64,000 nt of DNA from Pavona decussata. Taxonomy: Eukaryota. Made by a program: the position numbers and the translations under genes. Each line of letters opens with the position of its first letter. Position 1 is the stretch's first letter. The notes beneath the pieces were generated by a model. The model saw nothing but the letters and a program-made list of their open reading frames with translations. It was not told the DNA's origin and did not search any database. Below are positions 50,622 through 53,600 of this stretch, piece after piece. Location of the stretch: contig CDRNST010000229.1 of NCBI GenBank assembly GCA_977016875.1, forward strand, positions 124,001 to 188,000. The letters are read 5' to 3'.

Positions 50622-53600
50622 TTAACATTTTCTTGAAAAAATATTCACAAATTTTCTAAACGAACTTCTCTTAGACTTGAGATACTCTTCAATTTCCGAC
50701 TCTTTGTTCATTTGTGCATAATCGGCTGCATCTTTTCCATCTGCTGTAGTCAAACTGACATCAACTTTCAGCTCAACAAGCTTTTTCACAACTTGCATGT
50801 TACCATGGATCGCTGCCAAGTGCAGAGAAGTGAAACCATCACCATCGCGGGCATTGATGTCAGCCCCGTGTTCTACCAAGAGTTTGATGACTTCTTCATC
50901 GCCCACTTTACAGGCAATATGTAGTGCTGTTTTGTTTTTCCTCTCTGCGGTAGGTTTATCGTCAACTATAAGAATTTCTTTTTGTTTGTTGGCTGGTGGA
51001 TCTTCTCCCCATCCTGAAGCAAGAACAGTGCCAAAATTAGCCACGTCTATGCTGCCATCTTTCGTCTTCTTGTGGAACAATCCGGATGTAGCCTTCTTTA
51101 CCTCAACGTAATGCCAGGCCCGTTTTCCCTTGTCTTTGCCACGTACTAGAAATATATTGTCTTTTCGTTGGTACTTATCACGGATGCACGTATCAGCCTT
51201 GCTTTCAAGCAAAGTTTTGACAAGATGTTTGTGTCTGTTTTGAACTGCCAGATGAAGTGGAGTTATTCCACTGTTGCTTTGCAAATTAATATTGGAGCCG
51301 GCTTCTATCAAAAGCTTTGTGATGTTAACAAATCCTTCCCTGGCGGAGATGTGCAGCGCCGAGTAACCCTCATCTTGGATGTAGTCTGTACCAACTCCAG
51401 CCTGGACAAGAAAGTGTACAGCCATGTAGTTATTCCAGTAAGTTGCCATTATTAGAGGCGTACATTGGTCTTCTCTTTGAGCGTTCGTATCAGCTCCAAG
51501 ATCAATAAGTGTTTTAATGAAAACACCTGAACAACGCAGACTCGCCCACAGTAAAGGTGTTCGATTGCCCATTGCAGCAATGTTGACATCCATACCGTGA
51601 TTCAATACGAGTTCCACGGCCTTTTCTGCATCATTTTTGTCTCCGCATCGGTGTAGCTCTGCCAAGGTCCCATACTTCTGTAATGTCTCTTCATAAAGTT
51701 CCTTTATCTTGGCATGGTGCCGCTTTTTAAACGTCGAAAAGATATCACAGGCAGTCTTTGAGGGCGAAATCTTAGCGTTATTTGCGGTTGATTCGAAATT
51801 CATCTCTCTCGGAAAGTTATCAAGAAAGATGTTAAGAGTTGTTACGGTGGCATAAATTCCCTCATAGACACTGGCTTGGAGCAGATTGAATCCCGAGACT
51901 GGGTCAGCTGCTAAAACAGCCATTTTGGAAAGACATATAAGGCTGGGCTATGATGAAAAAAGAAAACATGCTATTATTTAGTTTTATGAGCCAGTTCCGA
52001 GAAAACCTAAATTTACAGTCAACATTTCTCTTGACGTTTTGCTGAAAATGATAGGGTATTTTCTAATTTATTCCAAGCTTGGTTTTGTAAGAAATGTAAT
52101 GATGTAGTCTCTAAAGAATAACCAGGCAAAGATAATCTATTCACTAGGTACTTAATCTCGTACCCAGATCTTCCACGGTCACATTTCCAAACCTGCAGTG
52201 AGACCTGGGTGCAAGATTAGTGTGTATCTAACTATGAATGCCTCACCGGTTGTTGAAAACTGGGAGTTGCACCATGCCTCTTGAGAATTTGTATGATCGG
52301 TTGGTGATTATGGCGTTCAGCTTTCTGCAGAGCTGTTTTCTGAAACTGAGGGGCAGAAATAATCCAATTTAGATAGGGGAGGAATGGAAGAAAGAAGAGG
52401 GAGGTTGACTTTAATTTATGGTATTAACCGTAAACCTTGAGCTCATTACAAATCCAATCCAAGATGATATGACGGTGTATATTTTTTTTGTGAAAAAATG
52501 GTCCATTTTAATGAAAAATGATTATTGTTCCAGAAAATCCAGTTTTCTTTGCAATTTTTAGATTGAAGTCCTAGAATTTTGCCAAGAATAGCGTTACCTA
52601 AGCTTAACCTAGCTTCTTGGTGTGTTCGCTTGTCGTGCACTTGTCGTTTTGCCAGTGATAAGAACCTCTACAACGTCGACGGCCGACAGTGAAAGAAAAT
52701 GACGAAGACACCTATTGTTTCTGATAACACAAGAGGCCTTGTATTGGGTGCCAAGCATTGATTGGACAGTTAAACATGTTTATGGGTGGCATTGGTTTGT
52801 TTTACGAGAGCTATTTTGAAGTGATGGTTTTTTTCAGAAGGTGAAATTAAAAGGACTAAAATTTGTTAGCTTTTCATCAAATGCTCAAGAATGGGGGGAG
52901 AGTAGGCTAACTTACATTCAAACAAGCTGTATAGAAAGATTTGATAATTGTGAAAATGTTTTCCTTGGAAGCCATTAGCATGACCATGCAATCGAAAACC
53001 CTGACATGTTTTTTCTTTTGTGTTTTGGCTTAAAGCACAAAATTGCAGAAACAGAAAAACCGCTTTAACCATTGGAACATCAAGAATGCAAAAAAGAATT
53101 GGCATGGTGATCTGTGTTGAAAACTCCTCCTTTAGTTATTTTTTTAGCAAATTGTTTTATGCTTACTCTATCTGTGGCGTTGACATCTGCACCGTGCTCT
53201 AATAACAGATTAACAACAGATTCCTGTCCGTACCAAGCAGCCAAATGGAGAGGAGTCAACGAAAACTGGAAAAAAAATGTTAATGGCTCGATAAGAAGGA
53301 TGGAATTTCCCGGTGTTGAAATAGACAGAATAATGTGACATAATGCATCAAAATATGAATAGATAAATAAATCTACCTTGTTTAGAGTATAAAGCTTTCG
53401 CTGTTAACATCAAACAAGCAATCAAAAAATGATAATAACTACTATTAACAGAAAAAAATACCTTATCTCTTTGGTTTACATCTTCCCCATTATCAAGAAG
53501 CACTTGAACAGCCTCCAACTGCCCAGCAATTGCTTCCTCATGAAGTGCTTTTCTAGACTTCTGAAACCGATAACGTGACATAAAAACGATTTGTTTATTT

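Follow-up and report, generated by a model that had tools for sequence, protein, structure and literature searches.

Two neighbouring exons in a 64,000-nucleotide stretch of the genome of Pavona decussata (assembly GCA_977016875.1, contig CDRNST010000229.1, positions 124,001 to 188,000; the whole stretch is called the window in the following, and positions are counted from its first letter) encode ankyrin repeats that are interrupted by a block of other sequence. A model-made reading of the letters alone (the original prediction) had likened this block to small proteins of Rickettsiales, which raises the question of what the block is, with whom it is shared and what it might do. The analysis described here revealed that it forms the central part of an α/β domain that folds independently, spans about 65-70 residues and belongs to a real, large and unnamed family. 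As far as the searchable literature shows, its co-occurrence in Rickettsiales and marine invertebrates has not been described so far.

A folded domain between the ankyrin repeats of two tandem exons

Since translation of the plus strand at 50973-51155 and 47416-47598 contains stop codons, a plus-strand reading of both regions was ruled out and the feature was assigned to the minus strand. Minus-strand translation yields the peptide IFLVRGKDKGKRAWHYVEV...FGTVLASGWGEDPP for the former region (copy 1) and LYLVRGTKKEKTVWNYVEV...FGTVLASGWGEGPP for the latter (copy 2), exactly as had been read from the letters before, and the core FGTVLASGWGE, for which identity between the copies had been claimed, is indeed the same in both. 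The peptides are part of minus-strand open reading frames of 433 aa (50622-51923) and 436 aa (47053-48363), in both of which the ankyrin repeats recognized by Pfam end near residue 249 and restart near residue 330, in agreement with the claimed position between ankyrin repeats. The approximately 79 residues in between had no Pfam match in either frame. The corresponding features are:

50622-51947, minus strand: exon of copy 1, with an acceptor-like start and an open frame of 441 aa
51177-51629, minus strand: ankyrin repeats of copy 1 N-terminal to the insert, residues ~99-249 (Pfam Ank_2/Ank, helix pairs in the model)
50940-51176, minus strand: insert of copy 1 (unnamed domain plus linkers), residues 250-328, with the core at 50973-51155
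50688-50939, minus strand: ankyrin repeats of copy 1 C-terminal to the insert, residues ~329-412 (Pfam, model)
47053-48372, minus strand: exon of copy 2, a tandem paralogue with the architecture of copy 1 (open reading frame, Pfam, acceptor-like start)
47383-47619, minus strand: insert of copy 2 (unnamed domain), with the core at 47416-47598, aligned with copy 1 and with stand-alone proteins

Copy 1 starts with a helical region, which is followed by five ankyrin repeats; after the unnamed domain come three further repeats and a helix at the C-terminus. Its stop codon is located at 50622-50624. On either side of the insert, the ankyrin matches lie above Pfam's cut-off (Ank_2 167 bits, Ank 138 bits); the best Pfam stretch on the N-terminal side covers residues 157-249, and on the C-terminal side Ank, Ank_4 and Ank_5 were matched at residues 331-360, 334-383 and 349-403, respectively. 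Directly 5′ of both open reading frames a conserved pyrimidine tract is followed by catag and, after the acceptor-like boundary, by C.CAGCCTTAT; this reads ttttcatcatag ahead of CCC at 51947 in copy 1 and gtttaaacatag ahead of CTC at 48372 in copy 2. As the protein-level likeness of the copies also runs up to this site (PSLICLSKM and LSLMSLCKH), they look like spliced exons beginning at 51947 and 48372, and judged by their in-frame stops alone both would be terminal exons. The two copies share 60% protein identity at a synonymous divergence (dS) of 0.83 and a ratio of nonsynonymous to synonymous divergence (dN/dS) of 0.30, with a value of 0.31 within the domain. These numbers indicate that purifying selection acts on both window copies, which have thus been maintained over a long time.

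The proposal that the insert is a discrete non-ankyrin domain is borne out by the missing Pfam match and by structure prediction. When the 79-residue insert was modelled alone with AlphaFold on a 150-row alignment, it adopted a strand-strand-helix-strand-helix order (hairpin, helix, strand, helix) at a predicted local distance difference test score (pLDDT) of 79. In the model of full-length copy 1 (pLDDT 88.7, predicted template modelling score (pTM) 0.81), the same topology is found at residues 257-320, and the domain (residues 251-320) is predicted with a pLDDT of 84-93; the high pTM suggests that its position is fixed relative to the ankyrin scaffold. Both copies have two hallmark motifs: the hairpin contains LVRG..G..W.YV, and (Y/F)G.(V/I)L.SGWG..PP marks the end of strand 3. 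Among 150 aligned members, the positions conserved in at least 90% (G13, W21, G49, S54, G55, W56, G57, and P60) are Gly, Trp, Ser and Pro only, so none is charged or of a catalytic type; other residues replace the SGWG Trp and the LVRG Arg in divergent paralogues. A homodimer prediction with two copies of the window domain, run without controls, returned "no answer" (score 0.00) and is not used as evidence.

Searches for a prior domain assignment, as suggested by the original prediction, matched no characterised domain. Pfam had no family covering the domain at E≤0.001 in any of 150 family members and none for the window insert at E≤1, NCBIfam had no match for the insert, PADLOC none on the domain, and a PDB sequence search with the insert returned nothing significant (best E 0.85). 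At the level of folds, nothing above background was obtained with Foldseek against the PDB (best E 0.67), with VIA-align in a wide search and a second look, in the ESM Atlas (template modelling score (TM) of at most 0.52; its feature search gave no usable match) or in BFVD (best E 0.064). Such weak results fall short of proof for a new fold. The best-superposing viral model, BFVD A0A481YNP1 from Pithovirus LCDPAC01 (497 aa), reached TM 0.49 by query (E 0.55, probability 0.85) with a root-mean-square deviation of 2.2 over 65 columns and may represent either a giant-virus relative or chance.

Distribution in Rickettsiales and in animals

A word search with the insert alone against 5.8 billion sequences retrieved three stand-alone proteins of 94-111 aa with 58-61% identity (E 1e-14 to 1e-16), a resemblance which, going by these values, is far beyond chance; among proteins of 238-758 aa, the word search returned only close ankyrin relatives, with E-values down to 1e-45. 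A profile built from five sequences and run against 1.84 billion representatives matched 1121 cluster representatives at E≤1e-3, of which 388 remained at E≤1e-10; a profile search of large databases had been suggested by the original prediction. Against the family profile, the window copies reach 129 and 122 bits over the whole ~65-residue domain. A tblastn search of a phage collection found no match to the domain. The lack of a Pfam model suggests that the domain is absent from the usual model organisms.

The original prediction had named stand-alone hypothetical proteins of intracellular alphaproteobacteria, and such proteins were found in Wolbachia, Ehrlichia chaffeensis, Anaplasma phagocytophilum, Neorickettsia and Xenohaliotis. 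Sequence comparison identifies the insert domain as the C-terminal part of wMel WD_0821 (AAS14508.1) and its orthologues in Ehrlichia, Anaplasma, Neorickettsia and Xenohaliotis. All named orthologues, which further include wBm AAW71225.1, E. chaffeensis ABD45073.1, A. phagocytophilum ABD43837.1, Neorickettsia NHE_0315, Xenohaliotis CAXC1_120030 and proteins of Ca. Mesenet and Neoehrlichia, are annotated as "hypothetical protein". This matches the earlier statement that no function is assigned, and family membership as such consequently yields no mechanism.

A pattern scan with one genome per species gave 10 loci, including those of Wolbachia from two Litomosoides species, Ca. Xenohaliotis californiensis and Rickettsiales bacterium Sesoko1, a strain which we take to be coral-associated; the remaining ones belong to three Rickettsiales, two alphaproteobacterial and one Gemmata metagenome-assembled genome (MAG) and to Lampropedia aestuarii, where the match is weak and covers 16 residues only. 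The Wolbachia, Xenohaliotis and Sesoko1 loci were recovered by tblastn at E 2e-21 to 3e-19, and against the five-sequence profile the wLsig and wLbra loci show 57-59% identity in the best segment (E 5e-20 and 3e-19). Ordinary bacterial genes surround the loci of one Rickettsiales MAG (L007) and of Xenohaliotis (L006). Larger samples of bacterial genomes, searched with a 150-row profile at a cut-off of E≤1e-5, gave the following counts:

Rickettsiales: 197 of 301 genomes with a match, often in multiple copies and with at least 19 in one genome
Alphaproteobacteria: 7 of 301 genomes with a match, 3 of them Rickettsiales
Pseudomonadota: 6 of 401 genomes with a match, all 6 of them Rickettsiales
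Planctomycetota: 1 of 251 genomes with a match, the Gemmata MAG itself

Outside Rickettsiales, the domain is nearly absent among the bacteria sampled.

The WD0821-type proteins have a length of 145-165 aa and consist of a disordered N-terminal tail of ~80 residues, an SF[AVL]x[KR] motif and the domain at the C-terminal end; their lengths are unlike those of the tested Anaplasma marginale effectors AM185, AM470, and AM1141 (PMC3225360). They share with the window copy the motifs LVRGKD.G..AWHYV and YG.(V/I)LYSGWG.(D/N)PP as well as the predicted fold. The SF[AVL]x[KR] motif, which precedes the first strand by ~10 residues in most stand-alone bacterial members, is lacking in the animal copies. 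In the window protein, no such motif was found and the domain is internal (residues 250-328 of 433) and embedded in ankyrin repeats, whereas in the WD0821-type proteins it follows tail and motif; the window gene therefore shares the domain with them, not the whole-protein family.

Genomes with a single strong match provided 16 loci, and at 10 of these, as well as in Xenohaliotis, the WD0821-type gene adjoins miaA in divergent orientation among housekeeping genes. In genomes of the Anaplasmataceae type (Wolbachia, Ehrlichia, Anaplasma, Neorickettsia, Xenohaliotis), it is single-copy beside miaA, which agrees with a previous study that listed WD0821 as one of five proteins that BLAST detects in all members of the Anaplasmataceae and in no other organism (Gupta and Mok, 2007; PMC2241609). 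A literature search by motif strings and locus tags returned this study as the only one mentioning WD0821. A single-copy gene at a conserved site by miaA, Sua5 and holB in these genomes, together with a place beside rpmA in another lineage, might point to a housekeeping role in bacteria such as binding to the ribosome, RNA or DNA, with the animal copies as a secondary co-option. Also in line with such a role are the retention of the domain in Rickettsiales genomes of ~0.9-1.0 Mb, the lysine-rich N-terminal tails of some members and weak, non-significant sequence or fold resemblances to the ribosomal proteins uL24, bS16, and bS6. Nevertheless, we consider a housekeeping role quite improbable and prefer, as set out below, to regard the domain as a binding or adaptor surface.

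Other Rickettsiales contain several old paralogues of the domain. In genomes of ~2 Mb these are divergent, with SGWG replaced by SGEG or SGYG, and some of them occupy conserved places in an HK97-type head gene cluster, beside rpmA or beside an AhpC gene. The paralogue in the head cluster, of the SGEGEPSDE type, was seen in four Rickettsiales genomes (L067:4270-4653 (+); L051, L055, and L058), where it is flanked by the major capsid gene, itself located after a prohead protease S78 gene, and a gp6-like head-tail connector gene; this cluster looks like a gene-transfer-agent or prophage head module. In the Rickettsiales MAG Spi319_bin9 (L007:5662-6768 (+)), the domain is situated between ankyrin repeats as in the animal proteins, and the protein is collinear with the window protein (32% identity over 256 aa). 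Its contig also encodes a bacterial NAD-glutamate dehydrogenase and a PleD-like response regulator, and its domain groups with the Anaplasmataceae-type copies and not with the animal ones. Distant members were found on two plasmids. A 1050-aa protein of Nostoc ATCC 53789 has the domain at its C-terminal end and a weak STAND-type match at its N-terminus. In Runella sp. SP2, plasmid pSP2_1 encodes a 133-aa member (L048:4995-5396 (+)) that starts 24 bases after a gene for a TraG/VirD4-type coupling protein, a single example of this proximity, and is flanked by two caspase-family genes and a TPR gene.

Within the 602-Mb genome from which the window is taken, the domain occurs at seven loci on five contigs, all with the order ankyrin-domain-ankyrin. 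The paralogous loci have an open frame of 440-540 aa except for one that is frameshifted inside the domain (G000:C251:2119206-2119399; L019/L020), being either a pseudogene or an assembly error. In this seven-member family the domain is looped out between ankyrin repeats 5 and 6. The nearest named relative is Stylophora pistillata PFX13095.1 (54-55% identity), and Stylophora XP_022808204.1, Lingula anatina XP_023933241.1 and XP_013397079.1 and Glandiceps talaboti XP_077977942.1 are further named animal members, so that the occurrence in some invertebrate proteins had also been stated correctly. Apart from ankyrin repeats, Pfam recognizes nothing in these named homologues.

An origin of the findings in bacterial contamination of the assembly, or in chance or low-complexity resemblance, has next to no probability. 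Contamination is ruled out by the structure of the genes, their number and their base composition: each window copy is read in frame within an ankyrin exon whose start resembles a splice acceptor, a few kb from a gene that is split over separate open reading frames and downstream of same-strand MIB_HERC2 exons, their G+C content of 0.43 is near the 0.39 of the window, and the genome holds seven loci on five contigs, with E-values down to 1e-45. The one sequence that would fit such an artefact comes from another assembly. Nephila pilipes GFU17072.1 (BMAW01030573.1, L030:10001-12997 (+)), a protein with ankyrin and TPR repeats and two copies of the domain, groups with the Anaplasmataceae-type sequences and is encoded near a PDDEXK_2 gene; this combination might imply that it is symbiont-derived DNA or a recent insertion in the spider assembly.

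History of the domain

The original prediction had proposed horizontal transfer and, as a check, a domain-only phylogeny that would reveal whether the animal copies nest within the bacterial ones. Trees of the domain were calculated from 225 and 90 rows with 75 columns and contained few supported branches. The ankyrin-embedded copies, both animal and unlabelled ones, form a group in the 90-row tree, with a Shimodaira-Hasegawa-like approximate likelihood ratio (SH-aLRT) support of 88. In approximately unbiased (AU) tests, neither the constraint of all ankyrin-embedded copies to one clade (p-AU 0.51) nor a clean split with all bacteria and the eukaryotic groups on opposite sides (p-AU 0.77) was rejected. 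With this weak resolution and both constraints unrejected, the tree shows neither nesting in bacteria nor a direction, and it provides no rooting there; the direction of transfer is beyond the reach of 75 alignment columns. Horizontal transfer as such is still likely from the distribution of the domain.

The same distribution favours a bacterial origin, since Rickettsiales contain the family in abundance, with deep diversification and conserved synteny, but its occurrence in eukaryotes is patchy. On the animal side, the window protein and its Glandiceps counterpart align collinearly over 411 aa (33% identity), including the region before the repeats, which indicates that the ankyrin-domain-ankyrin cassette is probably older than the split between cnidarians and bilaterians. 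The domain would accordingly have arisen in bacteria, entered animals a single time before this split and then been inherited vertically with many losses. We regard this course of events as modestly probable and a transfer in the opposite direction as somewhat unlikely. A more specific version, in which early animals gained a signalling domain of the Rickettsiales type that now serves as host adaptor in pathways of the immunity or cell-death type, on ankyrin, kinase, NACHT and TIR scaffolds, while WD0821, universally conserved in Wolbachia, Ehrlichia and Anaplasma, acts in the host cell as its symbiont counterpart via the same surface, is clearly unlikely.

Candidate function and the surroundings of the two exons

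The architecture of family members was determined by whole-protein Pfam scans of the window protein and 149 of the best profile matches. Ankyrin repeats were the most frequent partner (33 of 150), followed by TPR (7), protein kinase (6), ZZ (3), and TIR (2) domains. The domain ends at most eight residues from the C-terminus in 60% of the domain matches in these best 150 proteins, 18 of which contain two copies of it. Weak matches to NACHT, in an 1835-aa protein ending with the domain, and to NPHP3_N were also obtained. An unlabelled eukaryotic contig encodes a ZZ-ZZ-kinase-TPR protein with two copies of the domain beside a split gene for an Integrator subunit. On a compact, metazoan-looking metagenome contig, the protein P0046 (L070:10001-12760 (+)) combines a kinase, ankyrin repeats and the domain, a layout that is presumably RIPK4-like, and its gene adjoins BIR-RING and TRAF genes. 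Two further eukaryotic proteins of 238-241 aa, P0261 (L072:10001-10717 (+)) and its relative P0262, carry the domain at the C-terminus, and P0261 is encoded beside Death and zf-TRAF genes. A caspase-like nature of their N-terminal halves ("GHGE...DCSYSG", by eye) found no support from Pfam or PDB sequence searches. In two proteins on short contigs of unlabelled origin, a TIR domain is N-terminal and the domain C-terminal.

Based on these observations, the domain might be non-catalytic and serve as a binding or adaptor surface that is held rigidly by the ankyrin scaffold. In eukaryotes and free-living bacteria, this surface would be joined to parts of immunity- or cell-death-type signalling (kinase-ankyrin, ZZ-kinase-TPR, NACHT-like NTPases, TIR), and in the small bacterial proteins the same surface would be tethered to a disordered N-terminal tail. 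An adaptor role is suggested by the absence of any charged or catalytic-type residue conserved across the family, by the repeat scaffolds that carry the domain, by its recurrence with kinase, TPR, NACHT-like and TIR modules and near TRAF, IAP-like, Death and caspase-family genes, and by its frequent tandem duplication. We infer such a module tentatively, as a possible function. The explanation as a whole, comprising the domain family, its adaptor role and its history, falls just short of what we would call probable.

Alternatively, the domain might be a sensor of small ligands that carry phosphate, for instance a phosphoinositide or a messenger derived from a nucleotide, and thereby switch a TIR, kinase or NTPase module or relocate the ankyrin scaffold. 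By our reading, the strand, glycine-rich turn and helix of SGWG.DPP next to the basic hairpin turn RGKD.GK form a common anion-binding arrangement, and in the TIR fusions the C-terminal domain takes the position of SAVED-type sensors in defence TIR proteins that resemble P0064. However, the basic residues and the Trp are not retained in divergent bacterial paralogues, the net charge is variable (positive in the window copy, negative in Wolbachia), and neither a fold match to nucleotide- or lipid-binding domains nor a PADLOC match on the domain was obtained. A ligand sensor therefore appears unlikely, and the adaptor role remains the one that we favour.

Among known systems, the effector-associated and Death-like adaptor domains, which are said to belong to NTPase-centred conflict systems, are comparable in their syntax. 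As the domain described here, they are small, lack catalytic residues, occur alone or fused to STAND-like NTPases, TIR, TPR or kinases, are encoded near caspase-family genes and are found in both bacteria and animals. They differ in that the present domain has an α/β fold and not a helical death fold. Pairing of like with like defines those adaptors. The Latrotoxin C-terminal domain is one of several modules common to arthropods and endosymbionts of the Wolbachia and Rickettsiella type, for which lateral transfer is the usual explanation. Similar to the window domain, it is found on ankyrin repeats and shared by intracellular bacteria and invertebrates. In contrast to it, the window-type domain is internal to the ankyrin array, has no match to Pfam Latrotoxin_C and belongs to an animal family that spans Cnidaria, Brachiopoda and Hemichordata instead of one arthropod lineage.

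The original prediction had furthermore coupled the domain to a recognition module of the ubiquitin pathway. Such a module is encoded upstream of the ankyrin exons:

59321-62111 (61716-62111 and 59321-59560), minus strand: upstream exons with two MIB_HERC2 domains (Pfam PF06701, E 5.5e-18 and 1.1e-14)

These exons lie 7-10 kb upstream on the same strand, with ankyrin exons upstream as well, and each was searched individually with Pfam. The arrangement recalls the Mind bomb (MIB1/2) E3 ligases, in which one transcript encodes a MIB_HERC2-ZZ-MIB_HERC2 module, ankyrin repeats and RING fingers. Unlike in Mind bomb, no RING was seen, with no search having been aimed at RING or ZZ, the insert-bearing ankyrin tail is unrelated to the ankyrin region of Mind bomb, and the other paralogues have no MIB exons nearby. 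None of the 19 MIB_HERC2 matches in the genome is near any of the five further paralogues, and only ankyrin repeats were recognized in the named homologues from animals, so the proposed coupling does not hold for the family; a MIB-ankyrin fusion is a possible candidate at this locus alone.

These data also bear on the idea, likewise put forward originally, of an integrated decoy, in which the animal copy would mimic a protein of a symbiont or pathogen, or its target, and ankyrin repeats joined to a Mind-bomb-type ubiquitin ligase would detect infection. The MIB_HERC2 exons would fit this idea, as would the domain of marine-invertebrate-associated Rickettsiales (Ca. Xenohaliotis from abalone, Sesoko1), which has 55-59% identity. 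Yet nothing points to a decoy when the remaining evidence is considered: the cassette is collinear with a hemichordate protein, the dN/dS of 0.3 reflects ordinary purifying selection, whereas a decoy should show diversification, the join to the MIB exons is a candidate only, the five other loci have no MIB_HERC2 match in their vicinity, and the animal ankyrin proteins examined carry no NLR-type sensor. A decoy is thus very unlikely, and an adaptor surface on an ankyrin scaffold is preferred for the window copies, too.

The WD0821 orthologues belong to the few proteins found in the Anaplasmataceae genomes that were examined, which include those of filarial Wolbachia and of the bacteria causing ehrlichiosis and anaplasmosis. 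Their family becomes testable by the present analysis, as its conserved part is discrete, spread through most Rickettsiales and 50-60% identical to parts of ankyrin proteins from coral, brachiopod and hemichordate; naming, modelling and assays in a tractable cnidarian and in Wolbachia-infected insect cells are now feasible. Only a short list of domains connects bacterial conflict systems with intracellular symbionts and with signalling scaffolds of animals, and this domain is a further candidate for it. Even if its function turned out to be ordinary, it would be a new domain family for the databases.

Between the two ankyrin exons, the window contains an interruption:

49911-50145, no strand: run of N between copies 1 and 2 (assembly gap or masked)

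The spacing of the duplication is therefore incompletely assembled. Further runs of N are found at 16115-16250 and 25092-25237. On the plus strand at 44171-45421, two neighbouring open reading frames resemble, by eye only, a β-1,3-glucuronyltransferase (GT43-like) gene that is split by an intron, which fits an animal genome.

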